Shown here: one piece after another, positions 23,490 through 59,580 of the stretch
How the letters are laid out: each line of letters opens with the position of its first letter
Position numbering within the stretch: position 1 is the first letter of the stretch
Sequence record: MT135025.1
Strand: one strand, 5' to 3'
Length of the DNA stretch: 64,000 bases
Program-made: the position numbers and the translations under genes
The notes under the pieces: generated by a model
Told to the model about the DNA's origin: nothing
Databases searched by the model: none
Seen by the model: the letters and a program-made list of their open reading frames with translations, nothing else

Positions 23490-24371
23490 ATGATTATATT
23501 CGAAGATATTAATCCGCTGTGTGAAGCATTTGATCGCCCAGCACCATACAAATGGGATTCTATGTACAACGAAGCTCGATTTACGGTTGGGAACGTTCAG
23601 TATGTCGCGTTTATCAAAGATAATGACACAGCAAGAGGTTTAAGTCTGTATGTGGCATTCCAGCGTCGTGATAACGCAACTGGTCAATGGACTCACTCAC
23701 TTGCTAAAGGCTCGCCGAAAGACGCCATGACGGTATTGAGCACAATACTGGCAGCAACATTTGACAAGGCATCAAAAGTTGAACCGAATGAAATTACATT
23801 CAGTGCATTTCGTGACGCAGATGACGAAGACGCAAATAAGCGTTTTAGGCTATACAAGCGTATGGCTGAGCGATACGCAAAGCAAATGAATTACACAGTT
23901 CATATCACTGGTAATAGCTTCACACTAACAAACAACAATCCACCTAAGATCAGACGACTCCACAATGACGGCATTCACAAAGAAGATGGACTTACATACG
24001 TAAATTTCCCTGCTTGTAATGCCTTTACATGGGCGAAGATTTTCTGGCTTGACAATGACGGCGATTACATCAAACTTACATTGCCTCACGGTCGTATTCA
24101 CATTGTGAGAAAATCAAGTGACGTGATTGAAATCGAAGCAATTACACCGAAAGGTCGTTTTGACAATCTAGATTCAGATGAGATTTGGATGTCGATGTTA
24201 TCTGATATTAAAGTGAAAGCTAGAGGCGGAAGCACATTTACTATATCAGAGAAAGGCGCGATTTTAGATGCGGGTGATATGATTTTGTGTGAGCAAGGTA
24301 CGTTTTATTACCTAAGTTCTGAAGATGATTTCAAAGAAATCTGGGGATATGAAATCGACTCGATTGAATAA
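23490..24371 (+). CDS. Late protein, paralog of 58927..59580; candidate virion-packaged
   Basis: Leader MIIFEDINPLCE; motifs shared with 58927. Confidence 0.8.
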   Translation: MIIFEDINPLCEAFDRPAPYKWDSMYNEARFTVGNVQYVAFIKDNDTARGLSLYVAFQRRDNATGQWTHSLAKGSPKDAMTVLSTILAATFDKASKVEPNEITFSAFRDADDEDANKRFRLYKRMAERYAKQMNYTVHITGNSFTLTNNNPPKIRRLHNDGIHKEDGLTYVNFPACNAFTWAKIFWLDNDGDYIKLTLPHGRIHIVRKSSDVIEIEAITPKGRFDNLDSDEIWMSMLSDIKVKARGGSTFTISEKGAILDAGDMILCEQGTFYYLSSEDDFKEIWGYEIDSIE

Positions 24372-24372
24372 G

Positions 24373-24399
24373 AAAAGGGAGCAATTTGCTCCCTTTTTT
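24373..24399. terminator. Bidirectional terminator between convergent genes
   Basis: aaaagggagc-aattt-gctccctttt; near-identical copy at 63403. Confidence 0.88.
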
Positions 24400-24401
24400 G
24401 A

Positions 24402-26066
24402 TCATGGTGTCAGAGGACTACGTTCTTTCACTTTGCGGTCTTCGTCGATTTCAATATCAACAACTCGCATGAAGTTAGCAACTTGCGCTAACTCACTCAA
24501 ACGTTCCTGCTTTTTGTAAGCAGACAGGACGCCGCTTTTCGATGAATTGTCTTTGGCTTTCAAGCGAATCACCGCATCGAATTCTGATAATTGAACAACG
24601 TCGGCTTCGAACATCGTATTACGGTTGATGATGAAATCACAATCGCCTTTCTTCCCGTATTTGCCTGGTGCTAAAACAGGTAACCCGTCAGACTCAATAA
24701 CAAACACAACGTTCAGTTTTCTGTCAGATTCGAGCATATCACGCATAATTGATTTGCTATTCTTGCTCGTCGCGTTGACGATTGTTTTCGCGCTAGATTC
24801 AACAAAGTCACATACAACAAATGGATCAGTTGATGATGTGATGAACGCAGTTGAAACGAACGCGCCAGATTCAAGAATCGAGCCGACACGTTTGCTAGAC
24901 ATTTCACAACCACGATATAGCGTAACGCCATTCGACACCTTACCAGCTTCATAGAAAGCTCGGTCTAAGCGAGAAATTGCATCCCTAACCTTTTCATCAC
25001 CTGCGCCGTGAACTAACTCTTCATTGACCTTCCACGAATAACGAGACGCAGAATAGCGAGAAATTGCAGCTTGAGTAAGAGAAGATAGACCAGCATATGA
25101 ATCTTCTTGCATCATTTGCAACGATAATTGGTCATATTGCTTCTCAAACGCACGTGAACGGGCTTTTAACAGTGCGCCGCATACTTCGCTAATCAAGTTA
25201 GCTTTAACGCCCTCAGAGCGTGCAGCGTCGATATATGGGTTCATTCGTTCTGCTACATCAACAAGGTCGATGTTCATATCAACAATTGCTTGAGCAGCGT
25301 TAGCCAATTTCGTTAGACCGTCAGTTGCTGCCGCTTCTGTTAATTGCTGCTTGATAGATGCACTGACCCGCGCTTCCAGTTGTGGCATTTGTAGAATTTG
25401 ATTTGGGACGCGAACGGCAGGGTTTTCTTCTACCCATTGACCTAGAACATCATCTTCATAATCATCATAGCCAGCATCGGCAGTCACGATGATTGTTTTC
25501 TTGCTTGAAATGTCAGTCTCTTTCGCCATTTTAGCAGCAAGAATATTGATTGTTTCTTCGGTTGCTTCGACGAGTTTATCAGCGTCATAGCCTGGTTTCG
25601 TGATCACGAAGAAGCTGAAATCTTCAGCCATTTCATTATCACCGACGTTCATGATTTTAGTCGTTTCGCAGCCGTATCGAAGTTTCTTGAACAGCGTTTT
25701 AACACGCATGTCGAACATTTTACCGCTACCGATCTTTTGAATACGCATAGACACAGCGTTGGCGCGTGTTTTCAACATGAAACTTTGGATCAATTTAACC
25801 AATGTTTCTTGAAACTTTTCTTGGTCTCCCATGTCACGAATAGTTAATCCGCCTTTTTTGCCTCGCATTGCTGAGACAGTACAGAACCACGAACGTTTTC
25901 CGCGATTTCCGATGTTTGATTTTGTTTTAGTTGTGAACGAAACTACAACGTCACGAGCTTCGCCTTTCATATCGATCACAAAGAATTTGTTTTCTTTGGT
26001 CGAGCGAGCCGGATAGTAGTCGTACGTTGCGCTCATGTTTTCAGTTAATTGTTGAAATCCAATCAT
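24402..26066 (-). CDS. alt: Alt-like ADP-ribosyltransferase (atypical DxD at the catalytic loop)
   Basis: YS..YSWKVN..L, LDRAF, TLYRGC, FITSST, GDCDFIINRNTMF; next to gene 30 as in T4; leader ..QLTE. Confidence 0.7.
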   Translation of the reverse strand: MIGFQQLTENMSATYDYYPARSTKENKFFVIDMKGEARDVVVSFTTKTKSNIGNRGKRSWFCTVSAMRGKKGGLTIRDMGDQEKFQETLVKLIQSFMLKTRANAVSMRIQKIGSGKMFDMRVKTLFKKLRYGCETTKIMNVGDNEMAEDFSFFVITKPGYDADKLVEATEETINILAAKMAKETDISSKKTIIVTADAGYDDYEDDVLGQWVEENPAVRVPNQILQMPQLEARVSASIKQQLTEAAATDGLTKLANAAQAIVDMNIDLVDVAERMNPYIDAARSEGVKANLISEVCGALLKARSRAFEKQYDQLSLQMMQEDSYAGLSSLTQAAISRYSASRYSWKVNEELVHGAGDEKVRDAISRLDRAFYEAGKVSNGVTLYRGCEMSSKRVGSILESGAFVSTAFITSSTDPFVVCDFVESSAKTIVNATSKNSKSIMRDMLESDRKLNVVFVIESDGLPVLAPGKYGKKGDCDFIINRNTMFEADVVQLSEFDAVIRLKAKDNSSKSGVLSAYKKQERLSELAQVANFMRVVDIEIDEDRKVKERSPLTP

Positions 26067-26098
26067 TTTATAGACTCACCCTTTAGAAAATATATGAG

Positions 26099-26106
26099 TA
26101 TTTATG
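26099..26106 (-). promoter_or_regulatory. Late promoter variant CATAAATA (alt-like gene)
   Basis: Reverse complement of tatttatg, 33 bp upstream of the start. Confidence 0.55.
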
Positions 26107-26156
26107 ATGCACATAACACCCGTTGAAAATATTTTAAACTTTTTCGCAAAAAAAGG

Positions 26157-26229
26157 TTGCACAACGATAATGTTATCTCCTATGATTACTTCATCAAAAC
26201 GAATTAACAAAAAAGAGAGAACAATTATG
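26157..26229 (+). promoter_or_regulatory. Class A promoter and leader
   Basis: TTGCAC-N18-TATGAT; tcatcaaaacga..aaagagagaacaattATG. Confidence 0.7.
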
Positions 26230-26730
26230 AATGCACAATCAATGACTAACGCTCAAATCGCTGAACTATTCGACATGACAGTTGACGCAAACGGTTTTCA
26301 AGCAGTTGATGCGAAAGGTCGTCGTCATTACCTGACCGACTTACGTCAAAAAGCAATGAAAGCTGCTAAGACGAAGAAAGCACGTAAAGTACGCGCTGAA
26401 GCACAACCTAAAGCAACTGCCGAAGAACTACTTGCAGAACTACAAAGCGAGTCGTCAGATTTCTGGGAAATTCGCGAATCTCAGCCAGGGATGGACTCTG
26501 AAGAACACGGTCTGAACGTGTACGTGACTGCTGGTCTGCCTGATCGTCACCGCGTAATGATTCGCTCAAGTGTTTTAACAAACAAAGAGCTTGATCGTGA
26601 ACTCGGCTACCTGAATCCATCAAAGCAGAAAGAAGAACAGCGTCGCAAAAAATCGACAATTATTTTCTCAAACCGTTCAGCGAAAGAAATCGTTGAAATC
26701 ATTGAAAAAGTGAAGTCAATTAGTGAATAA
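26227..26730 (+). CDS. Hypothetical early protein
   Basis: Start after leader (MNAQSMTN). Confidence 0.8.
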   Translation: MNAQSMTNAQIAELFDMTVDANGFQAVDAKGRRHYLTDLRQKAMKAAKTKKARKVRAEAQPKATAEELLAELQSESSDFWEIRESQPGMDSEEHGLNVYVTAGLPDRHRVMIRSSVLTNKELDRELGYLNPSKQKEEQRRKKSTIIFSNRSAKEIVEIIEKVKSISE

Positions 26731-26759
26731 TGTGAACTAACTCACGAAAAAGTAGTTTT

Positions 26760-26841
26760 CGGGTATTGACAATAACACATCAATACCCGATAATAAACAC
26801 ATCAAGACGAGATACGAACTACTTAAAGAGAGAACATTATG
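26760..26841 (+). promoter_or_regulatory. Class A promoter inside an inverted repeat, with leader
   Basis: cgggtattga..tcaatacccg; TTGACA-N17-GATAAT. Confidence 0.7.
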
Positions 26842-27651
26842 ACAATCACTAAAGCAGAAATGAAAGCAATCGCACTTGACCTAATGAGCGGTAACAATCT
26901 AATGCAACGCGATTTGATTGCTGAAGGTTGGTCTTTCGAATTCTCAACTCGCAAAGCTGCACTTGGTGACTGTAACTACCGTACTAAAGTACTACGTCTT
27001 TCTGAAGTGTACTTGAATGCTCGTACTAAAGAAGAGCAAATCAACACAATCACTCACGAAATGGCTCACGCAATCGCGTACACTGATTTCAACGAACGTG
27101 GTCACGGTGCTATCTGGAAGCGTGTGCATCGTCAACTAGGTGGTACTGCTGAACGTTGTTCAACTGTTTCAAATCCTGAAGCCGTAGACAGCAAGTACGT
27201 TGTTTTCTTCGAAAACGCTCAAGGTGAACTAGAAGTAGTTCAAAAAATGGATCGCATGACTAAGCGTTTTCAACCAGTACACATCAAGTCTCTATACTTG
27301 AAAGGTCGCAAAGCTGAAACTGAAGGTCAACTTCGTTGTGTTTCTTCAGCGACGTTCAAAGCTATCAAAGCTGATTTAGAAGCTAAGAAAGCTGATAACG
27401 CTGAAGCATCAAAACCAGTTGCACCTAAAGCTAAGAAAGCTGAAACACCTAAAGCTAAGAAAGTTTCAGCACGCGGTCAAGCTGCTCGTGACGCAATCGC
27501 AGAAATCGTGATGACTACGACTCATAAAGGTTGCAAGTCAGTGTCTTTCGAACAGCGTGGTAAATACAAAGACTGGTACATCATGATTGAACTAGAATCT
27601 CACACAATCGAACAGCGTCTAGATACTTTCAAAAAGAAACACAGCCTATAA
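26839..27651 (+). CDS. SprT-like zinc metalloprotease
   Basis: ALGDCNY, ITHEMAHAI (HExxH), HGAIWK..LGG; Lys/Ala-rich linker. Confidence 0.88.
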   Translation: MTITKAEMKAIALDLMSGNNLMQRDLIAEGWSFEFSTRKAALGDCNYRTKVLRLSEVYLNARTKEEQINTITHEMAHAIAYTDFNERGHGAIWKRVHRQLGGTAERCSTVSNPEAVDSKYVVFFENAQGELEVVQKMDRMTKRFQPVHIKSLYLKGRKAETEGQLRCVSSATFKAIKADLEAKKADNAEASKPVAPKAKKAETPKAKKVSARGQAARDAIAEIVMTTTHKGCKSVSFEQRGKYKDWYIMIELESHTIEQRLDTFKKKHSL

Positions 27652-27661
27652 TCTCTCATTT

Positions 27662-27682
27662 AGCCCCGAAAGGGGCTTTTTT
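27662..27682 (+). terminator. Intrinsic terminator with GAAA loop
   Basis: agcccc-gaaa-ggggct plus T tract. Confidence 0.9.
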
Positions 27683-27712
27683 AGGTTTGAGCCGGAAAAA
27701 TTCCGTCTCATC

Positions 27713-27763
27713 TTAGTAGAATTAGTGCTTTTAGTAATATTAGAAGTATTAGTAAGATTTGTT
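27713..27763. repeat. 9-bp-period TTAG tandem array
   Basis: TTAG at 27713, 27722, 27731, 27740, 27749; TTTG at 27758. Confidence 0.8.
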
Positions 27764-27790
27764 TAACAAACACCTTGACAGCCGTATAAT
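27761..27790 (+). promoter_or_regulatory. Class B promoter
   Basis: GTTTAA-N18-TATAAT. Confidence 0.65.
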
Positions 27791-27808
27791 ACACGTCGAG
27801 GTGATGAA

Positions 27809-28048
27809 ATGATAACGATATACACAATTCCTAACTGTGACGGTTGTCGTCACGCTATCGCCCTCTGTAAGTTCAAACACGTCCCGTATACTGTAATCGA
27901 GTTACAGTCACAGACTGACATCGACCAATTACATCAAAAGCTTGGTGGCAATCGCAATATTCGCGTTCCTCTGGCTATGCATGGTGACACATACATCGGT
28001 CACCTGCCTGAATTGAAGAAATGGGTTGATGAACAGACGTATAAATAA
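27809..28048 (+). CDS. Glutaredoxin/thioredoxin-like protein
   Basis: IYTIPNCDGC (CxxC), RVPL..YIG. Confidence 0.88.
   Translation: MITIYTIPNCDGCRHAIALCKFKHVPYTVIELQSQTDIDQLHQKLGGNRNIRVPLAMHGDTYIGHLPELKKWVDEQTYK
28040..28047 (+). promoter_or_regulatory. T4-type late promoter
   Basis: TATAAATA exact. Confidence 0.85.
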
Positions 28049-28106
28049 AAGAAATTACGTACATTCTCTCCGCTGAAATGCGGCAATAAATTAAAGGAAT
28101 CAAACA

Positions 28107-29003
28107 ATGACTGTATCTAATAGTAACGGTTTACCAGACATTGTTACTGTTCAAAAACGACTATATCCGCTGATCTTCACGGAAATCGTTTCTGAACAGC
28201 CAACAAAGCAACCCGTTGCAACTGCTTACGGCTTTAAAGCTGTACCTGAAGCTGATGACGGCAGCGGCTGGACACAATTTGGGTTTAGACTTGATCGTTG
28301 GTATGCTCAAGTTGAATCTTCAAAAATGAAGACTGAAATCTCTCTTGAAACGCTGCAAGATATGCAAGCACTCGGGGTTAGCAATTCAGTGATCGTAGAC
28401 TCACTAGCTGACCAAATTGCTGATGAAATCAATACGTCGATTATCGGTGCGTTGAATAGCATTTCAACTGTTGGTGCTGCACTAACTCTGACGGGTAATA
28501 CTGATTTTGAAAAAGGTCAAGATCTTTATACGAAAGTACACCTAGCAGCGTCTGAAATTGAAAAAACAACTGGTTGTAAAGGCACATATGTCGTTGCGGG
28601 CGGTAAATGTTTCGGTTATTTGACTGGTTGTGGTGTTGTACAGCGAGTTGGCGAATCGGACGTTTACAAAGCATGGTCTGGTTTATACATCGTACACGAC
28701 AAATACGCAACAAGCGATTACGTGACTGTAGGTGTTAAGAAAGACATGGGTGATTATGAAATCTCAAGTCTAGTATTCAGCCCGTATCAATTCGACCAAG
28801 CGAATGACGGCGCGATTGCTTATCAATACAAGGGCACTGACCCGAAATCATTCCACCCTGTGTATGGTGTTATTGCTCGTTACGCACTAACTGTTCCGCC
28901 ACTAGAAGACAATCAGACTGGTGCAGTTGAGATTGATTGGTCGAACTTAGGCGCGCTTGCTAATAGCTCAAAGCTTTCATACACATACGCAGTAACAGTA
29001 TAA
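28107..29003 (+). CDS. 24: Capsid vertex protein (gp23/gp24 fold, short)
   Basis: LIFTEIVSEQPT..GFRLDRW..KMKTEISLETLQDMQA..EINTSII..YGVIARYAL resembles gp23/24. Confidence 0.75.
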   Translation: MTVSNSNGLPDIVTVQKRLYPLIFTEIVSEQPTKQPVATAYGFKAVPEADDGSGWTQFGFRLDRWYAQVESSKMKTEISLETLQDMQALGVSNSVIVDSLADQIADEINTSIIGALNSISTVGAALTLTGNTDFEKGQDLYTKVHLAASEIEKTTGCKGTYVVAGGKCFGYLTGCGVVQRVGESDVYKAWSGLYIVHDKYATSDYVTVGVKKDMGDYEISSLVFSPYQFDQANDGAIAYQYKGTDPKSFHPVYGVIARYALTVPPLEDNQTGAVEIDWSNLGALANSSKLSYTYAVTV

Positions 29004-29011
29004 GGTGTGAC

Positions 29012-29524: not shown

Positions 29525-29533
29525 GGAATTAAC

Positions 29534-30979
29534 ATGTTAGGTAACTTTGACTCATTTCTGAGTGAAAATCGCCGTCAAACTCAGGGTGGAAAAATCTACC
29601 CTAAGTTTGGTCAAGTTATTGTTGAGCTAGGCACTGCATCTACTGAGTTCAGCAAAGGCAAAGGCGTTGAAACAACTATCGGCATGATGGAGAAGGCAAA
29701 TGAGCTTAAATCTATCATGAACAATAAACTGGCTGAAGATAAAAACGTCGATGAGAAACATTTCGACATCAATCTGAGCGAGAACGTGAGCACGGTTAAC
29801 CTGCTTATGGAAAACGAATTCTTGGCGCTGCCAGCTCATGAGCTACAGCAAGTCAAATCAATGATCATGTGTACTGAAGCACGTCTTCCTAGCATCGTGA
29901 TTAAAGGCGCTTCATTGGATCAAGTTGTAGCTGAAGCAACGAAACTAGGCTACAAGAAAAGTGACATTCACGTTGTTTTCCCGATGCGTGAAATGAAAAT
30001 CAATCTTGCTGACTCTGACAAGATTGTTATTGAATCTCTATCAATTGACGACAATTCAGCGTCTGAGATTCTTTCAATGGCTGAAAACATCGAGCTTGGT
30101 GACGTTTATGTGACTGTAGAATCGGTTGATTCTAAGGCTGAACTGTCTGAAATCACTGAACTGAAGATTAAATCTGGTAAAAATGCGCTGACACTAGCTG
30201 CACTTAACCGCAAGATCATGGATCAGTTTATCGTGAAAGAAGCGAAAGAAGTTTCATATGCACGTGAGCGTAAAGAAGACACTGGTCTCCCAATGCTTGA
30301 AGGGTTCAAGGCATACGATCTGAAACAGAACATCACCATGATTGAACATGCTCAGAACGCATTCACAAAAGAGATTACAGTAGCTCCGCTATCTTCGACT
30401 GCGTGGCAAAATCTTGTTGATGTTAAAGAAGCTTACTTCGATAACGGTTGGAAACTGAAGCACAACAATACAAGCATCGTTCTAACAAACGCTGAACACG
30501 CAATGCGTGCTGGTCGTGTTTGTGAAGAATATCGAGTCGAGCTATCTGAAGCAGGTTATCCTCTTCTTGATATGATCGCAATGATGGAAAGCAAAGGCAT
30601 GACTCGCTTTGATTGTAAATCATTTGCTGAATCAATGATGAAATTCGACGGCTGTGTTACGCCAGAGCGCCAGACTGTGACTGCATTTGTTACTGAATCT
30701 GCTAGTAATCGCGTATTTCACCCGAATATTATGTCAAGCCTACGTCCTGTGACCGAAATGGTTGATGATGTTGACGGTCTAATTCGTGCGCTTGCTAATG
30801 ATCAGTTCAGTACGTTCAAAATCGGACAATCATTCTCTGAATCAATGCTTGACCAAGAAACGCTATACTCTATGATGGAAAGCATTGTTTCTGATGGTGT
30901 TGATGTATCAGTGGACGGGACTTTGATTGAATTCAAAGTGAATGCAACCAATTACCTAATCAATATCGACATCAAATAA
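29534..30979 (+). CDS. Hypothetical protein; candidate virion-packaged; degenerate P-loop-like N-terminus
   Basis: Leader MLGNFDSFLSE; YPKFGQVIVELGTASTEFSKG. Confidence 0.6.
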   Translation: MLGNFDSFLSENRRQTQGGKIYPKFGQVIVELGTASTEFSKGKGVETTIGMMEKANELKSIMNNKLAEDKNVDEKHFDINLSENVSTVNLLMENEFLALPAHELQQVKSMIMCTEARLPSIVIKGASLDQVVAEATKLGYKKSDIHVVFPMREMKINLADSDKIVIESLSIDDNSASEILSMAENIELGDVYVTVESVDSKAELSEITELKIKSGKNALTLAALNRKIMDQFIVKEAKEVSYARERKEDTGLPMLEGFKAYDLKQNITMIEHAQNAFTKEITVAPLSSTAWQNLVDVKEAYFDNGWKLKHNNTSIVLTNAEHAMRAGRVCEEYRVELSEAGYPLLDMIAMMESKGMTRFDCKSFAESMMKFDGCVTPERQTVTAFVTESASNRVFHPNIMSSLRPVTEMVDDVDGLIRALANDQFSTFKIGQSFSESMLDQETLYSMMESIVSDGVDVSVDGTLIEFKVNATNYLINIDIK

Positions 30980-30987: not shown

Positions 30988-31635
30988 ATGAAACAATTTT
31001 GTAATTTTTTAGCTGAAGTTCAGAAATACAGTTCAGCGGCTACGTCGATTCGCGGCAAAGAAGTTGCTGCATTGGTTAAATTGTTCAAGTCAGGCATGTT
31101 CGTGCCTGGCGGAACAGCACTTGACTACGGCGCGGGCAAATACGGTCGTAATGCTGAATTTCTTCGCAGTGAAGGCATTCGCACTTACGCATACGACAAA
31201 TTCAATGGGACATCGGCTGATGGTTGGAACGCAGTTAGCTTAACTATCCCAAATGGTGAGACATTCGATACCGGCTTCACGTCATACGTATTGAACGTTG
31301 TTCCTGAAGAAATCGAAGCAGAAATCATCCGTGATGTTGAGTCTCGTACACGCGGTAAAGTGTTCCATATTACACGCGGTACTGACATCACTCAGACTGT
31401 ATTCAACGTAATCAGCGGTAAGAGCAAGAATGACGTAATGATGCAATTCATTGCTCAAGAATATCCAGAGATTTACGGTCAGATTGTCGCGAACGGTGGG
31501 ACGAAAGAATTGGCTAAAGAGATTGCAACCCGTGGAGTTGTAACAGCTAAAGACAGTTTCCAACGTATTCCAGACCTATCGAAATACGGTTACAAGAAAT
31601 CTGGTTCAGGTGCTTCGGTAGTGTGGACAAAATAA
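30988..31635 (+). CDS. Class I SAM-dependent methyltransferase; candidate virion-packaged
   Basis: ALDYGAGKYGR, AYD, SYVLNVV; leader MKQFCNFLAE. Confidence 0.8.
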   Translation: MKQFCNFLAEVQKYSSAATSIRGKEVAALVKLFKSGMFVPGGTALDYGAGKYGRNAEFLRSEGIRTYAYDKFNGTSADGWNAVSLTIPNGETFDTGFTSYVLNVVPEEIEAEIIRDVESRTRGKVFHITRGTDITQTVFNVISGKSKNDVMMQFIAQEYPEIYGQIVANGGTKELAKEIATRGVVTAKDSFQRIPDLSKYGYKKSGSGASVVWTK

Positions 31636-38728: not shown

Positions 38729-38794
38729 TATAAATATCAATGTAGCTAGGTTTAGCGGCTGAAAAGACGTTGCTCGGTACACGTCCTGCTACAT
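38729..38794 (+). promoter_or_regulatory. Late promoter followed by a branched RNA structure
   Basis: TATAAATA; atgtagc/gctacat closing stem with inner gacgt/acgtc hairpin. Confidence 0.6.
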
Positions 38795-49937: not shown

Positions 49938-50121
49938 ACGACTATACTCACATGAAGTTGATCACGAACTACAGCGTCGCGACGTTTGGTTGAAAGCGTG
50001 GTGTCATACTGCTAACGCGAATGACTGCAAAGAAACGTCAACTGCAACAAACTATGCTGATGCCTGTCTGGCTGCATTTGACCGTCGTTTTGAAGCTATC
50101 GAGGTAATTAATCATGACTGA
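49930..50121 (+). CDS. Hypothetical protein
   Basis: Start moved to MAKRLY. Confidence 0.65.
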   Translation: MAKRLYSHEVDHELQRRDVWLKAWCHTANANDCKETSTATNYADACLAAFDRRFEAIEVINHD

Positions 50122-50512
50122 TTTTGATATTGCACTACTTAACCCGACTATCATCAAGTCAACTGAAATTGCAGGTCATAACTTCGGTAACAAAGTTATC
50201 GAGATTGTGAGTGATCACATTGACGGCGATGACATGGATAACTTCATTGAATTCATCGTTGAAGCTGAAGCACGAGAGCGTGAGCACCCGTATGTAGGTC
50301 ATTTCTACGGTGATTTGTTAGTCATGAGCTTGTCTGAAGACCGTCATCACTTCGAAGCACGTATGTCTGACGAAGACATTGCGAATCTGACAATCACGAT
50401 TGATGATGCATTTATTCAATACACAAATGAGTTTATTGAATGGTACAAGCAGAAAGCGCGAGAGTTCTTCGATGATGATGAATTGGAATTCATCATTGAA
50501 AACGAAATCTAA
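50114..50512 (+). CDS. Hypothetical acidic protein
   Basis: ORF. Confidence 0.75.
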   Translation: MTDFDIALLNPTIIKSTEIAGHNFGNKVIEIVSDHIDGDDMDNFIEFIVEAEAREREHPYVGHFYGDLLVMSLSEDRHHFEARMSDEDIANLTITIDDAFIQYTNEFIEWYKQKAREFFDDDELEFIIENEI

Positions 50513-50513: not shown

Positions 50514-50542
50514 AAAATCCCGTCTCTATTGGCGGGATTTTT
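50514..50542 (+). terminator. Intrinsic terminator
   Basis: aaaatcccg..cgggattttt. Confidence 0.8.
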
Positions 50543-50585
50543 AGTTTTCATCTAAATAGAAGAAACAACACAAAAAGGTATCATA

Positions 50586-52037
50586 ATGAAACTGTTTACT
50601 GAATTTTATCAAGAAGTTCGACTTGACGAAATCTCAGATCGTGCGAATATCGACATTGATTGGGATTGGGGTCATGAGAACGGTACGGGAGAAACTTCGG
50701 CGAGATTTGACGCAGCCGGTGAGAAATTCCAAGTTAGCGTTGACGAGAGTAACCCGGGTTATTTCACGATCACATTCCAGAACTCTAGTGGTTATTCTCA
50801 GACTGGTAGAGCGGGACACTCTGCGGCTGCTGTATTCTCTGGCGTATTGACGACTTTACGTGAATTCACCGAAACGTACGAAGAAGAAATGGGCATGAAA
50901 CCATATGAATATGACTTCAGCGCAGCGTACGAACTACCGCGAAATCACGACTATTACTCATTGGTTAACAATCGTCGCGAGGCAACTCGTTTAGATGAAG
51001 AAAGTAAGAAAAAGCTATTGAAAGACTTGATTTCTCGCCCTATGCTTTACTACGCACTATCGTTGACTTTTGGTAAAGAATACGGCTATTCAACTGAAAT
51101 TAGCGACCGTTGGCTTGCTCGTCTTGCAGGGGGCGCGAATGATTTCCGTTCCGTTCGTAAGAACGTGACTCGAAGCATTCTGTCGATGAATGACAACGAC
51201 GTTAACCAAGCGTTGATGAACATGAGCGGTTCTGTTTCGTTCACTCTTACCAACGAAAACGAACGTCCTAGCAGCTACGACACAGCATTCGGTGGCGGTC
51301 CGTCTCTTGAAGACTACGTTGATGAAGCAGACCAATACCAAATCGAAGCGTGGATCAATGATGGTCGTGAAGATGAAATCATCGAACATGCTGATTGGCA
51401 AACTCTAGTTCGCATTGCGGAATGGGGTCTGATGCACGATGAACTGATTTTCCATGATGATGAAGACGTTCGAAACGCGGTAATTCGCACAGACTACGAA
51501 ATGGGCGAGAAACTAGCCGAATCGCCTGAGTGGGAACATCGTAAACAAGCTGCTGAAAATGGTTTTGGCATTTGGGATCTTGTTCTTGACTCTGACGAAG
51601 ACGTGCGCGAAGCTGCATGGGACTGGTCGTTTGAAAATGACGATGCTGATACTCGAATCACATACGCGAAACGCTACGAAGGCAACTTCGGTCGCGCAAT
51701 GGCTGAAGACGTGTGGGATCGCATGATCGACGATTCAGATGACTATGAAGAGCGTCAATACGTAGCTGAACAAGGTTATCGTCTTGAAGAACTTCTAGCA
51801 GACCATGACGAAGACGTGCGTTCTTCTGCAATCAATGCTGTATTCACGGTAATGGGTCTGGATGGTCGAGAAGCGGCTGAGTTCTTGATGGAAAACTCTG
51901 AACCTTACCAAGAAGAAGTGTTTGAATACGCGATTAACGGTAACTTCGGTCCATCTTTCGATGAAGCACTAATCGAAATTGCTGAAGAAAACGGCGTTGA
52001 TGTTTCTGAGTACAAAGACGAAGAAGACGACGAATAA
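50586..52037 (+). CDS. Late protein with acidic HEAT/LRV-like repeats; candidate virion-packaged
   Basis: TCTAAATA at 50551; leader MKLFTEFYQEVRLDE; repeats D.DEDVR. Confidence 0.75.
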   Translation: MKLFTEFYQEVRLDEISDRANIDIDWDWGHENGTGETSARFDAAGEKFQVSVDESNPGYFTITFQNSSGYSQTGRAGHSAAAVFSGVLTTLREFTETYEEEMGMKPYEYDFSAAYELPRNHDYYSLVNNRREATRLDEESKKKLLKDLISRPMLYYALSLTFGKEYGYSTEISDRWLARLAGGANDFRSVRKNVTRSILSMNDNDVNQALMNMSGSVSFTLTNENERPSSYDTAFGGGPSLEDYVDEADQYQIEAWINDGREDEIIEHADWQTLVRIAEWGLMHDELIFHDDEDVRNAVIRTDYEMGEKLAESPEWEHRKQAAENGFGIWDLVLDSDEDVREAAWDWSFENDDADTRITYAKRYEGNFGRAMAEDVWDRMIDDSDDYEERQYVAEQGYRLEELLADHDEDVRSSAINAVFTVMGLDGREAAEFLMENSEPYQEEVFEYAINGNFGPSFDEALIEIAEENGVDVSEYKDEEDDE

Positions 52038-53052: not shown

Positions 53053-53060
53053 GTGAACAA

Positions 53061-53653: not shown

Positions 53654-53655
53654 AT

Positions 53656-54342: not shown

Positions 54343-54366
54343 AAAGAGGGGCATTCGCCCCTTTTT
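54341..54366. terminator. Bidirectional terminator
   Basis: aaaaagaggggc-attc-gccccttttt between convergent genes. Confidence 0.82.
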
Positions 54367-55420
54367 ATGGTCTGTAGATCATGTGATTTGAACCCATTCG
54401 TTCCCATGTACCTAGATTCATGCGATTTTTCATTTCAGCGAAGAATGCGGGGTTTGCTCTAATGTCATCAAGTGGCAGTGCAACAACACCTTCAGTTTTA
54501 TGCGCCAATAGCTCTAGTTTATCAAGCAAATCAGACGTTGTACGACCGTCATATTTGAATTGACTGAACCAATAACCAATCTTACTGAATTTCGTATCTC
54601 TTGTGTATTTCACATCAAAGCCTTTCAGAGCATACGCTAAGTTACTTTCTTTACCGTGAAACGGCTTGCGATATGCGCTATGTTCAGCACCAGCACGAGC
54701 AAGCAATCTCTTCTTAGCTGCGTCTGGTAGATTGAACCACCCATCAAAGTTTTTCTTGAAGTTCAACATCCATGCTTCTGGCGTAGCTGGTGAGCCTTTG
54801 AAGTATGCTTTCGTATCAGCAATGGCTTGTGCATAGCGTGCGTTAATCTCATGAGAATAGTTCTGATATTCGTCGTGAGACGCTTCGTGACCGCTTTTAG
54901 CGTGACGGATGAACTCTTTATCAATGTATCCGCGTTTACGCCCTGAGTGTTGATACACGCCCTCTGCGTCGCTTGTCTCGAAGTCTTCAATGTCACCAGA
55001 ACGATAGTTGTCGTAAGCGTGTTGCAGTTCATGTAATGCCGTGCTATACAACTGTGGTTTCTGCAATCTGAATTTCGCCATGATTTGACTAACTGCTGTT
55101 ACTCCAGTTATATCCACGACAAGCTTGAGATACCCTGCTTCTGTGATCGAGTCGTCATGTAATTTGCCATTCCAAACACCGAGTTCGGTTGGGTTATTAT
55201 TGTCTAACTTCAGATATGCTAGAATACCTTCAGCTAGTAATGCATCGAACTCACTCTCACCAGTTCTGATATTCAGAGTTTTTGTGTTGACGGATAGTTT
55301 ATTTGGATCCCATGGTGCTTTACTTAGAGCGCCTTCTAACTGGCGTTCCAATGTATCGACGATGGTTTTTGACGCTTGTTCTAATGCGCGTTGTGATTGT
55401 ACGTTTTCAAAAATAATCAT
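54365..55420 (-). CDS. Zincin-like metalloprotease domain protein; probable late gene
   Basis: STALHELQHAYD (HExxH), Y..HEINAR; CTAAATA on the minus strand at 55453-55459. Confidence 0.7.
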   Translation of the reverse strand: MIIFENVQSQRALEQASKTIVDTLERQLEGALSKAPWDPNKLSVNTKTLNIRTGESEFDALLAEGILAYLKLDNNNPTELGVWNGKLHDDSITEAGYLKLVVDITGVTAVSQIMAKFRLQKPQLYSTALHELQHAYDNYRSGDIEDFETSDAEGVYQHSGRKRGYIDKEFIRHAKSGHEASHDEYQNYSHEINARYAQAIADTKAYFKGSPATPEAWMLNFKKNFDGWFNLPDAAKKRLLARAGAEHSAYRKPFHGKESNLAYALKGFDVKYTRDTKFSKIGYWFSQFKYDGRTTSDLLDKLELLAHKTEGVVALPLDDIRANPAFFAEMKNRMNLGTWERMGSNHMIYRP

Positions 55421-55438
55421 CTTTTTTCTCGAATTCGG

Positions 55439-55500
55439 TTGACTGTATTACTTATTTAGGTTAATATCTCTCTCATCGAAACGAAAGAGAGAACATTATG
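55439..55500 (+). promoter_or_regulatory. Class A promoter and leader; its spacer holds the divergent late box
   Basis: TTGACT-N17-TAATAT; tcatcgaaacgaaagagagaacattATG. Confidence 0.75.
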
Positions 55501-56193
55501 ACTAATGCAGCACGCAAATATGTATACGACATCTTCCATGATGAGCTTCAAAAGCCGGTTGTGAATCTAGACGTATTTAAAATCAAGGGTTCAGATGGTA
55601 AGCCAGTGATTAACTATCTATCGAACCCGCACCTACGCAAACAACGCTTTATTATGTTCGTGAATAAACGACATGACAACAAGTACGGACGTTCTCTTTG
55701 GTCGCATGATATTCGTGATGATTGTGACAAAATCGAAGGTACTTGGTCGAGCGTGGCTAAGGAAATCATCAAACGCAAAGCCGAATACGCAAATTACGTG
55801 ACTAAGACGTATCTTGATTACGACTATGGTGTTGAAGAGCCGACCCTTGCAATCATCGACAAGATGCTGAACAAGCCGAAGCGTTTTCACGTTGCAAAGT
55901 ACATCAATAATGAACTGTGTGTCAGTTCGACGAACAATTCAACTGTGCTAATTGATCGTGATACTGGTGTGAAATTCGTTGCGAAGATGCAAGATTATCG
56001 CCATACTAGTGATATAATGCGACTTGCAACACCTGAAAAAGTGTTTACACCTAACGAAGAAAAAGCACTTTGCAGTGCAATTACACATCTTGTAAATTCT
56101 CGCATCAACGATATTCGTGCTAAGAAACGTGCGAAAGAAGAGAAACGCCGCCAAGCAAAACGTCAACAACTAATCGAAGCATACGGGGCATAA
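55498..56193 (+). CDS. Hypothetical early protein
   Basis: ORF after leader. Confidence 0.8.
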   Translation: MTNAARKYVYDIFHDELQKPVVNLDVFKIKGSDGKPVINYLSNPHLRKQRFIMFVNKRHDNKYGRSLWSHDIRDDCDKIEGTWSSVAKEIIKRKAEYANYVTKTYLDYDYGVEEPTLAIIDKMLNKPKRFHVAKYINNELCVSSTNNSTVLIDRDTGVKFVAKMQDYRHTSDIMRLATPEKVFTPNEEKALCSAITHLVNSRINDIRAKKRAKEEKRRQAKRQQLIEAYGA

Positions 56194-56195
56194 TC

Positions 56196-56588
56196 ATGGC
56201 ATACGAAGTAATCAACGGCAAATTGCGTAAAGTAAAGAAAAACAAGCCACGCGACTATGATAAAGAATGGTCAAAGATGCACGAATCTGCCAAGAAGCAA
56301 GTCGAAATCATGGATCGTATTCATGAACGTGAGCGCATTGACCGTCTAGGTACTCGTGAGCGTCACGAAGCAATGATTGACCTTGCTAAACGCAATGAGC
56401 GTAAAGGTAAGAAAGGCGGTGACTGTAACGTAACTCAGTGTCAAAAGCCAGGCGCAAGCTCTTACAACACTGCAATGAGAGCGTATTACTGCGAGTCTTG
56501 TGCTCACGATATTTGGCAAGCAGGTCAACGCGACGGTCGTGACTTCATTCGACCAACACCAGATTACACATACAAGTACGAGGGTTAA
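56196..56588 (+). CDS. Putative Zn-finger protein
   Basis: GGDCNVTQCQ..YYCESCAH. Confidence 0.7.
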   Translation: MAYEVINGKLRKVKKNKPRDYDKEWSKMHESAKKQVEIMDRIHERERIDRLGTRERHEAMIDLAKRNERKGKKGGDCNVTQCQKPGASSYNTAMRAYYCESCAHDIWQAGQRDGRDFIRPTPDYTYKYEG

Positions 56589-56592
56589 TCTC

Positions 56593-56832
56593 ATGGGCGA
56601 TTTTCTATTGGCAATGTTTATCTTCTCGTTCGTAATGGCAAACATCGGTTCGATTTTCATTTGCTTGTATGCGGCATTCAATCGCCAATACAACGTACCG
56701 ATGATCTTAGTTGCACTGTACGGGTTCATGGGTACATTTGTTGTCGGCATCGTGTTCTTTCTGCTGTTCATCTTTGCCAAAATCGAAGAAACGAAATTCT
56801 GGCAAAAACTGTCTAAAATGAGGGAATTCTAA
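56593..56832 (+). CDS. Small membrane protein
   Basis: Two TM segments. Confidence 0.65.
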   Translation: MGDFLLAMFIFSFVMANIGSIFICLYAAFNRQYNVPMILVALYGFMGTFVVGIVFFLLFIFAKIEETKFWQKLSKMREF

Positions 56833-57164
56833 TGCAACAAACTGTATTATTCATCGACTTCCGCAACCCACACACTGCGATTGTCGCCAACACGACATTA
56901 CGAGACAAAAACTTCGATTTGTCGGGTATGGGATTGCGTCGAGCTTGTCAGTCGAACTATATTGCACTTGAGAAGCAAGGCAAATGGCGTTTAGTGAAAT
57001 GTCGTTACATGTTTGGGTTCGAATCTATGGAATTCAACACGCTCGATGGTGTTGTTGCATTCATCAACGCGATTAACATCGACAACAATCAACCATTGAT
57101 TCGTGAAGTTGTTGTTGAAGAAGTCGCACCCGTGTACACTAACATTAAAGTACGAGGTTTATAA
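56832..57164 (+). CDS. Hypothetical protein
   Basis: Coupled ORF. Confidence 0.7.
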   Translation: MQQTVLFIDFRNPHTAIVANTTLRDKNFDLSGMGLRRACQSNYIALEKQGKWRLVKCRYMFGFESMEFNTLDGVVAFINAINIDNNQPLIREVVVEEVAPVYTNIKVRGL

Positions 57165-57445
57165 TGGGATTTGAAACAAAAATTATCTGCTATGCAGCGC
57201 ACGTAACTGAATTTGAGCCAGGATGGGGAACTCGACCAGATGGTTACATCATTGCCAAGACTGAAGCTGATGTTCTGGCAAAAGGCGAGCACATGCGAGA
57301 GATCGCTAAACAATCCAAACACGGCTATGAGTATATCGGTGAAGTCTTTAAGTTCGAACCGACTCAGAAAGCTATTGATGAATTAACCGACCGTGACTAT
57401 ATCTGGACTGGTCGAAACTTTGATGAATGGGGTACTGTACTATGA
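57164..57445 (+). CDS. Hypothetical protein
   Basis: Coupled ORF. Confidence 0.7.
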   Translation: MGFETKIICYAAHVTEFEPGWGTRPDGYIIAKTEADVLAKGEHMREIAKQSKHGYEYIGEVFKFEPTQKAIDELTDRDYIWTGRNFDEWGTVL

Positions 57446-57675
57446 CAATCTTTCTGCTTGTATCATTCTTTCTAGGCGCTTATTTCATGAGCGAACTGCC
57501 ACCAGAATTGCGATACAAAACAACATCGCCTAAGAAACTATGGGCTTCTGCATCACGACTGCAACAAATTGCACTTGTTGTCGGGTTTGTCGGCGTGCTG
57601 TTCTTCTACTTGATTCTAGCTATCCTAATTGGATGGACTAAAGTTAAAGAATCTGACTGGAATCGCAAGGCATGA
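57442..57675 (+). CDS. Small membrane protein
   Basis: Two TM segments. Confidence 0.65.
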   Translation: MTIFLLVSFFLGAYFMSELPPELRYKTTSPKKLWASASRLQQIALVVGFVGVLFFYLILAILIGWTKVKESDWNRKA

Positions 57676-57842
57676 TAGTTCTTCAGCACGAGACTGACGG
57701 GTATATCGTCCAAATTGGATGTGACATTTGTTGCACCCCTGACATTGACAAAGCATCCATGTTCGAAACTGTTGGTGTCGCACAAGAATTCAAAGATCAA
57801 TGGGACTTATGGGACTGGGAAGTTAGAGAGGTCGGCTTATGA
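57672..57842 (+). CDS. Small hypothetical protein (not in ORF track)
   Basis: ATGA overlaps at both ends; MIVLQHETDG.. Confidence 0.6.
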   Translation: MIVLQHETDGYIVQIGCDICCTPDIDKASMFETVGVAQEFKDQWDLWDWEVREVGL

Positions 57843-58027
57843 TGCGTAGGCATGAAATTCAAGAACTAGTTGAGCGTCGCGGGTTTGAATTTCGCGAAGC
57901 AATCAATGAATACAGCGAATCACGTTGGCAAGTCATCGACAATGGTACAGTGGTCTACGAATCATACAATGAATACTGCATTGAAGCATTCTTGCTTGGC
58001 GTAGATTACATCACAGACGCAATTTAA
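57839..58027 (+). CDS. Hypothetical protein
   Basis: ORF. Confidence 0.65.
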   Translation: MMRRHEIQELVERRGFEFREAINEYSESRWQVIDNGTVVYESYNEYCIEAFLLGVDYITDAI

Positions 58028-58047
58028 GCCGCATTTCGCGGCTTTTT
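58026..58047 (+). terminator. Intrinsic terminator
   Basis: aagccgc-attt-cgcggct plus T tract. Confidence 0.75.
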
Positions 58048-58056
58048 GAGGTTCAT

Positions 58057-58359
58057 ATGAAGAAACAAATATTAAACATTCAGCGCGACGATGCGAAATT
58101 CGAGCTATATCGTCAAGGTCAAGCTGCACGTCATGCACGTGCTGAAATCATCCGACACGTTGCGAAGAATCATAACCCATTTCTAGTTGGTCAATACACG
58201 CTTTACAAAGAGCACGACGTGAAAATCGTTCGTCAGTTGCTGCGTTATGCTGAGATAGATGCTGATGTGCGAGTTGTCCCTACGATTGGTCGTTTACCAG
58301 ACTGTTTGAACGAAATTCACGGAATCGGGTTCGAGGTAACGCTAAATAATGATAGTTAA
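58057..58359 (+). CDS. Hypothetical protein
   Basis: ORF with GAGG SD. Confidence 0.7.
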   Translation: MKKQILNIQRDDAKFELYRQGQAARHARAEIIRHVAKNHNPFLVGQYTLYKEHDVKIVRQLLRYAEIDADVRVVPTIGRLPDCLNEIHGIGFEVTLNNDS

Positions 58360-58633
58360 CATTGCTCATCATTCTTTTGATGTGTACATTGGTCGCGGCA
58401 CACCGTTCGGAAATCCATTCAGAGCAGGGATCGACGGCACTCGGAGCGAAGTTATTGAGCTTTATCGAGAGTGGTTGCGCATTCAATTACAAGACGACGA
58501 ATTTAAAAAGCAGTTTATGCAACTAAAAGGAAAGATTCTCGGCTGTCATTGTAAGCCAAAAGCGTGCCATGGCGATGTAATTCTCGAAGAACTTGATAGA
58601 TTGAGCAGCCCACTAAACAATTTTATAGGTTAA
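58349..58633 (+). CDS. DUF4326-family protein
   Basis: VYIGRGTPFGNPF..LGCHCKPKACHGDV. Confidence 0.85.
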   Translation: MIVNIAHHSFDVYIGRGTPFGNPFRAGIDGTRSEVIELYREWLRIQLQDDEFKKQFMQLKGKILGCHCKPKACHGDVILEELDRLSSPLNNFIG

Positions 58634-58636
58634 TCT

Positions 58637-58930
58637 ATGAGAGAAGCAATTGCATTATTAAGCAACACGAGAATGGGATATACTGACATTAGCGCATTTG
58701 GCGATCCAGTATTATATGTTCATGCGGGACATGAGACGGTATTAAAAGTGCAATACACTGAAGATTGCTACTCATTTTACGACTACAGAAGCAAGTATCT
58801 TTATACAGAGCAGTCCATCGACGACTTAGAGATACATTTGAAATCAATAGATGTCGGGTTAGACGATGATCTACCGTTAAATGGTAACATCGACAAAGAC
58901 ACAATACCAGATGGGGAATTTTTAGAATGA
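58637..58930 (+). CDS. Hypothetical protein
   Basis: ORF. Confidence 0.7.
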   Translation: MREAIALLSNTRMGYTDISAFGDPVLYVHAGHETVLKVQYTEDCYSFYDYRSKYLYTEQSIDDLEIHLKSIDVGLDDDLPLNGNIDKDTIPDGEFLE

Positions 58931-59580
58931 AGTTTAGTGAATATCAAAGAATAAACGAATCTCTAGATCGCCCTGCTAATTATAAACTGGTTAGAGAACT
59001 CCCAAATTTAAACGTGTATGCGTTTCAAGTTGGTGGTGTTTATTATGAAATAGACATTCAGAAATCAAACATACGAGAGCCTAACGGGATGCAGTCAATG
59101 AAAGCTGAAGTCTCATTCAAAGCACTCGACGGTAGTGGTTATCAACTAACCAAAAAAGACGATAAAACAGCACGAATTGTACTATCAACCGTAGTTGATG
59201 CTATCTTCAGCTTCGTACGCGAATACAATCCTGCTCAAATATTATATTCCGCATTCAACGATGCTGATCCTTCAGATGCTGCTAAACGACTTCGTTTATA
59301 TCAGATCATGACTAAAGCAAAACTGCGTGAATTCCCCGAATATGATTTCCGAAACGTTGGGCGTGATTTCATCGTCTACGATGTCAATTACCAAAAACGA
59401 GTCGAGGAATTTTCAAGAAGAGCACGTAGACCAGTGGGATATGAAGAAAGATCAGACCACGTTGAAGTGAATTTATCACACGCCAACGCTTTTGCGTTTA
59501 TACGGGCGTTTGGTGTAAATGATGGCGACTCGAAGAGCGGCGTACTAGGTAAAGGTCGAGCTTTCGTAGGAGCAACATGA
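58927..59580 (+). CDS. Paralog of 23490..24371; candidate virion-packaged
   Basis: Leader MKFSEYQRINE; shared motifs. Confidence 0.8.
   Translation: MKFSEYQRINESLDRPANYKLVRELPNLNVYAFQVGGVYYEIDIQKSNIREPNGMQSMKAEVSFKALDGSGYQLTKKDDKTARIVLSTVVDAIFSFVREYNPAQILYSAFNDADPSDAAKRLRLYQIMTKAKLREFPEYDFRNVGRDFIVYDVNYQKRVEEFSRRARRPVGYEERSDHVEVNLSHANAFAFIRAFGVNDGDSKSGVLGKGRAFVGAT

Follow-up and report, generated by a model that had tools for sequence, protein, structure and literature searches.

A leader-bearing DUF6934-type GNAT-like module in proteins of Vibrio phage V07, proposed internal head proteins

A KVP40-type phage encodes a set of proteins sharing an N-terminal unit, in which a leader of 9-15 residues ending in (L/I)-x-E precedes a GNAT-like domain of about 140 residues; its members are the products of the reading frames starting at 23490, 58927, and 50586 and, probably, an Alt-like ADP-ribosyltransferase. 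The shared module is a GNAT-like domain of about 140 residues and represents a divergent branch of the Pfam family DUF6934 (PF22028). We consider it somewhat probable that these proteins are internal head proteins, which would be packaged, processed by the prohead protease, and ejected. The window (64,000 nt of Vibrio phage V07, MT135025.1) is 99.4% identical to KVP40, and the phage is of the KVP40 type within the T4 superfamily.

The two most similar proteins, 23490 (293 aa) and 58927 (217 aa), and a nearby junction are laid out as follows.
23490-23525, plus strand: leader of the 23490 protein (residues 1-12), a predicted propeptide with a prohead-protease site, ending in L-C-E
23526-23939, plus strand: GNAT-like DUF6934-type module of the 23490 protein (residues 13-150)
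23961-24371, plus strand: C-terminal domain of the 23490 protein (residues 158-293), mainly beta in the model
58927-59580, plus strand: truncated ortholog of KVP40.0115, with leader (residues 1-11), module (residues 12-153), and a stretch to residue 217
59571-59582, no strand: junction at which the sequence departs from KVP40 (breakpoint between 59576 and 59577, +/-1)

The original prediction called 23490 and 58927 clear paralogs joined to different C-terminal payloads. The paralogy was borne out, as BLASTP aligned about 215 residues at 30% identity (E 5e-19) and every motif pair quoted for the two is present in the translations. For this pair, the different payloads were not. KVP40.0115 has 306 aa, and its last 89 residues are absent from ORF 58927. 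About 5.5 kb of KVP40 (about 67231-72726) is missing from the window at the junction, which has a 6-bp microhomology (GAGCAA) on both sides and forms the stop codon of ORF 58927; it is either a deletion or an assembly junction. Because the end of the ORF coincides exactly with the departure from KVP40, we regard the shortness of 58927 as truncation and not as a distinct architecture. The KVP40 paralogs 0058, 0115, and 0116 are full-length relatives of one another. Although BLAST found no link between the C-domains of these three paralogs, hhalign connected them at 90% and 55%, and therefore we rejected the idea that they carry unrelated payloads; by the profiles, these C-domains are fast-diverged versions of one domain. 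The C-domain of 23490 is a remote homolog of that of KVP40.0115 (hhalign 90%, E 1.6e-6), and searches with it gave no informative match. Some relatives of about 300 aa have two copies of the module, and the C-terminal half of the 293-aa proteins might accordingly be another copy that has degenerated; we rejected this on the model, in which that half is a distinct domain of mainly beta structure.

The third member combines the module with a repeat region.
50586-50630, plus strand: leader of the 50586 protein (residues 1-15)
50631-51155, plus strand: diverged DUF6934-type module (residues 16-190), located by hhalign and hmmsearch
51330-52037, plus strand: acidic HEAT-type repeat region (about residues 249-483), located by Pfam HEAT

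Neither 23490 nor 58927 was matched by 50586 in pairwise BLAST, and profiles were needed. A narrow family profile matched the 50586 family at 63% (hhalign, E 6.8e-5), and a profile of 115 sequences raised this to 98% (E 2.6e-13, 145 columns). In an hmmsearch of the latter profile against all window ORFs, 50586 scored 29 bits (E 7.7e-10); no ORF other than 23490, 58927, and 50586 reached significance. The N-terminus of 50586 matched nothing in Pfam even at E<=10, and its module has an insertion of about 30 residues ahead of the last helix. By these profile comparisons, it is a true, diverged member of the module family, in agreement with the earlier view that it follows the same motif order as 23490 and 58927 before switching to acidic repeats. 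The repeats are of the HEAT type (Pfam HEAT, 25 bits; cut-off 23.5), with HEAT_2 under its own cut-off, and one homolog of 50586 is annotated as an armadillo-like helical protein.

The probable fourth member is encoded on the opposite strand.
24402-26066, minus strand: Alt-like ADP-ribosyltransferase (KVP40.0059, 554 aa, phrog_802), with leader (residues 1-9), N-terminal domain (about residues 10-170), and ADP-ribosyltransferase (ART) domain (residues 279-553)

Residues 279-553 matched phrog_802 with E 1.4e-88, and residues 5-198 matched positions 3-242 of the same profile with E 2.5e-24, in register with the N-terminus of T4 Alt; homologs of the protein carry PF03496. Judged by these matches, it is a full-length Alt homolog with both the ART domain and the Alt N-terminal region. 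The original prediction had offered the Alt-like N-terminus as a possible remote member of the module family, and several weak lines of evidence point the same way. The Alt-like family matched the 115-sequence module profile at 25% (hhalign, E 7.8e-4) over 136 colinear columns, language-model feature matches of the Alt-like N-terminus to DUF6934 clusters in the Atlas reached 0.90-0.91, and a BFVD fold search with the 23490 model returned five T4-type Alt proteins among its matches. The sequence link is marginal: the match of the narrow family profile was confined to the leader, T4 Alt as a single sequence gave E 0.06 against the wide module profile, the N-termini of T4 Alt and of the KVP40 Alt-like protein showed no resemblance by BLAST, and the Alt N-terminus matched nothing in Pfam even at E<=10. 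A structure model of the Alt-like N-terminus built with 10 close homologs was poor (pLDDT 51), and its BFVD matches, all above E 0.001, are suggestive only. Taken together, the Alt-like N-terminus is probably a remote member. Truly different payloads are present in 50586, with its HEAT repeats, and in Alt, with its ADP-ribosyltransferase, and varied partner domains recur across the wider family.

An exhaustive search for the module yielded 956 cluster representatives; the HMM search, of the kind that had been suggested, matched 23490, 58927, and 50586 in the window. The best Pfam match of the module is DUF6934, and the window proteins themselves fall below its gathering cut-off of 27 bits (17.1 for 23490 and 22.6 for 58927; 21.8 for KVP40.0115 and 18.5 for KVP40.0116); 50586 and the Alt-like protein did not match this Pfam model. 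Relatives found via the KVP40-type module profile scored 30-98 bits against DUF6934, and the module matched an Atlas DUF6934 cluster structurally with TM 0.78 and rmsd 2.6. The module is therefore homologous to bona fide DUF6934 members through intermediate sequences, and the fold is also shared. DUF6934 is reportedly mentioned once in a Flavobacterium genome report. Across the family, which numbers hundreds of phage proteins, the module occurs as single copies, as arrays of 2-5, and fused to enzyme domains that include GNAT, Zeta-toxin, and ParB-nuclease, so that the modular joining of a common domain to differing partners was confirmed well beyond the window. The pI of the module spans acidic to basic.

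The leaders end in L-C-E at residue 12 (23490), I-N-E at 11 (58927), L-D-E at 15 (50586), and L-T-E at 9 (Alt-like protein), and these L/I-x-E ends are invariant among the orthologs of all four window proteins; in 23490 orthologs, E12 never varies and position -2 keeps L/I/V. The leader end of 23490 aligns with the (L/I/V)-x-E that opens every domain copy, with a hydrophobic residue at -2, a free position at -1, and 99% Glu. Capsid targeting in T4 needs no more than the first 10 residues, roles have been described for residues 4, 7, 8, and 10 of the capsid-targeting sequence (CTS), and the gp21 prohead-protease motif of T4-type internal proteins is L/I-X-E (PMC9026906). Within its first ten residues, 50586 has F4, F7, Y8, and E10, spaced as in the CTS of T4 IPII/IPIII; these residues and E15, where a second L-D-E ends, are invariant in 7 orthologs. 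Aromatics at CTS positions 4 and 7, present in 50586, were found in 14 of 103 N-terminal family copies, and the full aromatic pattern in about 14-18% of such copies. T4-CTS-like leaders and aromatic targeting residues occur in N-terminal copies only. The 58927 protein has F3 and Y6, F4 alone is present in 23490 and in the Alt-like protein, and T4 Alt has none. The N-terminus of KVP40 gp24, examined to calibrate the protease motif, has no clear propeptide.

Late-promoter motifs were found upstream of three of the four module genes, at 24-33 nt.
23434-23466, plus strand: terminator-like hairpin (23434-23457) followed by TATAAATA (23459-23466), which lies 24 nt ahead of the ATG of 23490
26099-26106, minus strand: CATAAATA, late-promoter-like with one mismatch, 33 nt ahead of the ATG of the Alt-like gene
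50515-50558, plus strand: terminator-like hairpin (50515-50543), then TCTAAATA (50551-50558), which lies 28 nt ahead of the ATG of 50586

The motif before 23490 is an exact T4-type late-promoter motif, of which the 64-kb window holds three only, including one upstream of the head vertex gene 24 (28040-28047). That before 50586 has one mismatch, and 58927 lacks a late-promoter motif.

From these features, we envisage that the module proteins would be synthesized late and brought into the prohead core by the leader, possibly with assistance from the domain; a gp21-type prohead protease would then cleave them after the Glu, and they would be ejected into the Vibrio cell together with the DNA. In the cell, the attached parts would act, that is, the ART domain, the HEAT repeats, the beta domain, or the GNAT-like domain itself. 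The earlier proposal that the common domain could mediate packaging or ejection is compatible with the leader and its protease motif, with the late-promoter motifs, and with the precedent of T4 Alt. Its carrier role is not needed: as ten residues suffice for targeting in T4, the 140-residue domain need not be a carrier and may instead be an effector or core-binding unit. Observations that count against packaging include the absence of the full aromatic targeting pattern from 23490 itself and the finding that some module relatives belong to phages with a non-T4-type portal, whose prohead proteases may differ in specificity. Literature searches for virion proteomics of KVP40-type phages found none. 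A virion proteome of the phage Atu_ph07 has been published.

In relatives, the unit is repeated 2-5 times or fused to enzymes with each copy retaining (L/I/V)-x-E, and the tandem arrays may represent polyproteins that are cleaved into single units within the head. A tentative extension, which we hold with low confidence, is that phages of the T4 superfamily and related large phages generally use DUF6934-type modules to load and process the proteins that they deliver from the head, the arrays and fusions being polyproteins. The leader of the first copy would direct the chain to the prohead, cuts at each (L/I/V)-x-E would release GNAT-like units and free effectors for injection, and the Alt N-terminal domain would be the founding experimental example.

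Alternatively, the proteins could be ordinary cytoplasmic paralogs, with the DUF6934-type domain being a soluble GNAT-derived enzyme or binding module inside the infected cell; (L/I/V)-x-E-A-F-D-x-P-Y would then be the first element of the fold, and its likeness to the T4 CTS and protease site coincidental. We regard this as possible but rather unlikely. In the model, the conserved L-x-E of 23490 is part of a short helix (residues 8-13) packed against the domain, and hence may be a structural element instead of a protease site; the following F, D, P, Y, and W are conserved too, as expected of a fold core. Most N-terminal copies lack the aromatic targeting residues, the four window genes are located amid replication genes, and the KVP40 module genes are surrounded by replication and nucleotide-metabolism genes. 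However, a coincidence would have to account for a hydrophobic -2, free -1, nearly invariant Glu pattern in register with the T4 Alt cut site, for aromatic residues confined to N-terminal copies, for late-promoter motifs at the right distance, and for fusion partners typical of injected effectors, with one relative in a head-module context.

It is improbable, in our estimation, that the module itself is the active part, either as a minimal acyl-CoA-dependent acetyltransferase or as a CoA- or nucleotide-binding pseudoenzyme acting on a host target, with the variable C-terminal parts being accessory; such a role would be compatible with packaging or its absence. KacT and GmvT, both toxin-type GNATs, are among its structural neighbors, as is the anti-CRISPR AcrVA5; true GNAT domains are its most frequent fusion partners, and the family consensus has a T-G-x-G-D loop ahead of the central helix and an S-R-x-x-L-Y helix (Y at 96%), which we take to recall GNAT motifs A and B. 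The module differs from GNATs in lacking the alpha1-alpha2 arm, and Pfam GNAT models did not match its sequences. The Q/R-x-x-G-x-G/A acetyl-CoA loop is absent, T-G-x-G-D being the consensus, and KVP40 members are degenerate there. A Foldseek search of the PDB with the two-domain 23490 model gave no significant match. Finally, a chance or compositional likeness of 50586 and the Alt-like protein to 23490 and 58927, to which the empty pairwise BLAST and Pfam searches might have pointed, is highly improbable given the profile matches described above, which already refute it for 50586; for the Alt-like protein it may still be the explanation.

Phage proteins injected with the DNA are the first to act when a phage meets host defences, and they are hard to recognize from sequence outside T4 Alt, the T4 internal proteins (IPs), and the P1 Dar proteins. 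If packaging holds, the leader and DUF6934 unit would provide a sequence signature by which injected effectors could be found across hundreds of marine and jumbo phages, a role would be assigned to DUF6934 and to the hitherto unexplained N-terminal third of Alt, and some phages would deliver polyproteins cut up within the capsid. The natural leaders and carrier units might also be used to load foreign proteins into phage heads. If the motif is only structural, a well-defined, widespread family of GNAT-like phage domains with unusual tandem architectures still remains.

Among the closest known systems is T4 Alt, a capsid-packaged and ejected ADP-ribosyltransferase of RNA polymerase, with its homolog at 24402-26066; T4 alt and the Alt-like gene both adjoin the DNA ligase gene 30. 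The T4 Alt leader is cut experimentally at ITE-6, before LFDED, in register with the family (L/I)-x-E-[ASL]-F-D. In contrast to T4 Alt, 23490, 58927, and 50586 have no ART domain. T4 IPI, IPII, and IPIII have a short leader ending in L/I-x-E, removed by gp21, and varied mature parts, and some family leaders are near-identical in pattern to the T4 IP leader MKTYQEFIAE. The T4 IPs are small, basic, and mutually dissimilar past the leader, whereas here the leader precedes a conserved, often repeated 140-residue domain. For T4 IPIII, changing the Glu reportedly abolishes processing while packaging still occurs. Polyvalent proteins combine 2 to 15 effector-type domains per polypeptide and are linked to head or transfer genes (Iyer et al. 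2017, PMC5512222); term searches of that paper found no description of the DUF6934-type module. The large module relatives resemble them in combining GNAT, Zeta toxin, and ParB nuclease, and one lies after the portal gene, the typical site of head-delivered polyvalent proteins. Unlike polyvalent proteins, the KVP40 proteins are small, with one module and one partner, and are encoded among replication genes.

Four genes were assigned by comparison with KVP40, a T4-superfamily Schizotequatrovirus to which the window is 99.4% identical (100% to Vibrio phage V07, MT135025.1); we refer to the first, third and fourth by their start positions:

23490-24371, KVP40.0058, directly 3' of DNA ligase gene 30
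24402-26066, minus strand, KVP40.0059, Alt-like ADP-ribosyltransferase
50586-52037, KVP40.0097
58927-59580, counterpart of KVP40.0115

The offset between window and KVP40 coordinates falls from 8198 to 7647 between window positions 23000 and 50586, and the window therefore has about 550 bp more than KVP40 within that interval.

The sequence motifs on which the original prediction had based a common N-terminal domain were all found in the translations of 23490, 58927 and 50586. Paralogy of 23490 and 58927 was borne out by an alignment of about 215 residues with 30% identity (E 5e-19). Pairwise comparison of 50586 with these two gave no match, and its N-terminus was related to their domain by the profile methods hhalign and hmmsearch. 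With hhalign, a narrow family profile reached 50586 at 63% (E 6.8e-5) and a 115-sequence profile at 98% (E 2.6e-13, 145 columns), the latter alignment revealing an insertion of about 30 residues ahead of the last helix. When the 115-sequence profile was run against every window ORF by hmmsearch, only 23490, 58927 and 50586 were significant; the Alt-like protein came next, below significance (E 0.13). The common domain is a GNAT-like module of about 140 residues, a divergent form of Pfam DUF6934, preceded by a short leader ending in (L/I/V)-x-E. The acidic repeats expected behind it in 50586 are present and are of the HEAT type.

We then asked whether the C-terminal parts are different payloads, as had been proposed. 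All three KVP40 paralogs (0058, 0115 and 0116) matched phrog_6387 over their full length. Among 19 proteins of paralog size, the first 150 residues were mutually similar by BLAST in all 19, and the remainders past residue 150 fell into three groups with no BLAST cross-matches. Profiles of the C-terminal domains linked the 0058 type to the 0115 type (90%, E 1.6e-6) and the 0115 type to the 0116 type (55%, E 1.2e-4). Because profile comparison joins the three groups, 0058, 0115 and 0116 are paralogs along their entire length, and their second domain evolves fast. The payload idea thus holds for the HEAT repeats of 50586 and the ADP-ribosyltransferase domain of Alt, which truly differ, but not for 23490 versus 58927. 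In ValKK3-type relatives, the 0116-type gene encodes the module alone (149 residues).

The length of 58927 (217 residues, against 306 for KVP40.0115) is uninformative on architecture. The window matches KVP40 up to 59576/59577 and then picks up about 5.5 kb further along it, with a 6-bp microhomology at the join that creates the stop codon of 58927:

59571-59582 (59576/59577), junction with microhomology GAGCAA

The absent KVP40 stretch (about 67231-72726, ~5.5 kb) contains the last 89 codons of KVP40.0115, the third paralog KVP40.0116, dCMP deaminase, folE, other genes and the 5' end of the QueF-like gene KVP40.0123, of which an ORF with a GTG start remains at 59675-60475. In the 349-kb V07 record this stretch is present at another place, where its identity to KVP40 is only 97.9%. 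The record thus resembles a mixture of two related genomes, and the junction may be either a real deletion variant or an assembly product of a mixed stock; the length of 58927 is uninformative whichever applies.

An exhaustive profile search gave 956 cluster representatives at E<=1e-3, many of which passed the DUF6934 cut-off. Among the best 150 of the 956, one copy of the module was found in 56 proteins, two in 53, three in 28 and four or five in 12. Its position may be N-terminal, internal or C-terminal, in proteins that reach 2215 residues in length. Non-module segments contained a GNAT domain in eight cases, and also Zeta toxin/P-loop kinase, amidoligase, 5'-nucleotidase, ParB-like nuclease, cytidylyltransferase, HD, gamma-glutamyl cyclotransferase, DUF192 and DUF5661 domains; BFVD contributed a fusion to a deaminase, as well as Alt proteins of the T4 type. 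A common module with varied partners is therefore correct at the superfamily level. Six metagenomic relatives (P0032, P0046, P0048, P0094, P0036 and P0044) consist almost wholly of three to five back-to-back copies; no further domain can be recognised in them, and nothing but a conserved junction motif separates the copies. The gene contexts of relatives are those of phages: one lies on a 210-kb T4-like marine contig, one directly 3' of terminase, portal and two GNAT genes, and two more on phage contigs. In L003, a portal protein carries a fused 2'-5' RNA ligase domain (5249-8374); two GNAT genes come next, along with a 2215-residue protein with three weak module copies. DUF5661 (PF18905) recurs with the module, fused or in an adjacent gene (L006 2757-4514 and Atlas clusters), and may be another component of its system.

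The start of the module is strongly conserved. Across 283 aligned copies its first residue is Glu in 99%. Two positions earlier, 98% of N-terminal and 94% of internal copies have L/I/V/M, and the intervening residue is variable. In T4 IPIII, residues 1-10 form the capsid-targeting sequence, of which residues 4 and 7 are required for targeting and 8 and 10 for processing (PMC9026906); IPII and IPIII begin MKTYQEFIAE, and IPI begins MKTFKEF. Of 103 N-terminal copies, 14 showed the full pattern (aromatic, two residues, aromatic, aliphatic, one residue, Glu), MKTFQEFFTE and MKRFKEFINE among them; all 178 internal copies lacked it (Fisher P 4e-7). Because of this split, N-terminal copies appear often to carry both targeting and processing determinants, and internal copies to keep processing only. 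F4, F7, Y8 and E10 of 50586 are each invariant among its orthologs, as is L/I-x-E at residues 9-12 of 23490, 58927 and the Alt-like protein.

Leader-like sequences were observed elsewhere in the window:

29534-30979, plus strand, hypothetical protein starting MLGNFDSFLSE
30988-31635, plus strand, hypothetical protein starting MKQFCNFLAE
50234-50263, plus strand, internal Met opening the sequence MDNFIEFIVEA within ORF 50114-50512, just 5' of 50586

The first two belong to genes directly 3' of head vertex gene 24 and late sigma gene 55 and agree with the capsid-targeting pattern of T4; PHROGs and Pfam gave no function, and their products are candidate internal head proteins without relation to the DUF6934 module. 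The third is very near the IPII/IPIII leader MKTYQEFIAEA and could be an alternative start or chance.

The Alt N-terminus had been suggested as a remote member. On phrog_802, the KVP40 Alt-like protein and T4 Alt have their N-termini in register over the first 190-240 positions. A wide profile aligned with the Alt N-terminus over 136 colinear columns, leader included (hhalign 25%, E 7.8e-4); the 23490 model matched five T4-type Alt proteins in BFVD (E 1e-3 to 6e-3, probability 1.0); and language-model features of Alt-like residues 1-190 pointed to viral DUF6934 clusters (score 0.90-0.91, 177-186 features shared). A model of the Alt-like N-terminus, itself of low confidence, shows the element order of the module over its first two thirds, and its BFVD matches, though weak, largely coincide with those of the 23490 model. 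Although none of these five lines is decisive alone, together they make membership more likely than not.

Expression signals were also examined. The exact T4-type late-promoter motif TATAAATA occurs only three times in the window, and one-mismatch versions 37 times on both strands of the 64 kb, fewer than in shuffles (58 expected):

24 nt 5' of the 23490 start, exact, just after a terminator-like hairpin 3' of the ligase gene
33 nt 5' of the Alt-like start, one mismatch
28 nt 5' of the 50586 start, one mismatch, after a hairpin
28040-28047, plus strand, exact, 5' of head vertex gene 24
38729-38736, plus strand, exact, between genes 45 and 44, 5' of the clamp-loader region

That three of the four chosen genes should have a site in the 40 nt before their start is very unlikely by chance (order of 1e-5, a rough estimate). 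The gene for the late sigma factor gp55 is present in the window.

The most economical reading would be that the module proteins of the window are head-internal, protease-processed and ejected, like T4 Alt and the internal proteins. The arrays and fusions of relatives would then be cargo, possibly polyproteins cut at each junction. As the main rival explanation, L-x-E-A-F-D would be no more than the structural element with which the fold begins: the model shows a short helix there, and some relatives come from phages whose portal is not T4-type. A general DNA-binding role of the module, as in the basic internal proteins, is unlikely because its pI varies widely. The module might instead bind the scaffolding core, which is attractive for Alt because its six-residue leader lacks aromatic targeting residues; it might be an acyltransferase or a CoA-binding pseudoenzyme, since the family consensus retains a T-G-x-G-D loop and an S-R-x-x-L-Y helix; or it might bind a host target.

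Earlier work has described capsid-targeting leaders, processing by gp21, Alt and polyvalent proteins (PMC3012670, PMC9026906, PMC5694885, PMC5512222). The accessible parts of the literature contain no description of a conserved DUF6934/GNAT-like module that starts with a leader, is common to Alt and occurs in arrays parted by protease-type motifs. Such a module, with putative functional roles, appears to be the new element. Its conserved start is the motif L/I-X-E, after whose Glu the T4 prohead protease gp21 cuts (PMC9026906). Each T4 head packages about 40 copies of Alt, which is ejected and is cut at ITE-6 (PMC5694885), and the LFDED that follows this cut fits the E-[ASL]-F-D start of the module family. 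The Alt-like protein also has L-S-E at residues 523-525 (24489-24497, minus strand), 29 residues from its C-terminus, reminiscent of LTE-619, where T4 Alt is reported to be processed at its C-terminal end (PMC5694885).
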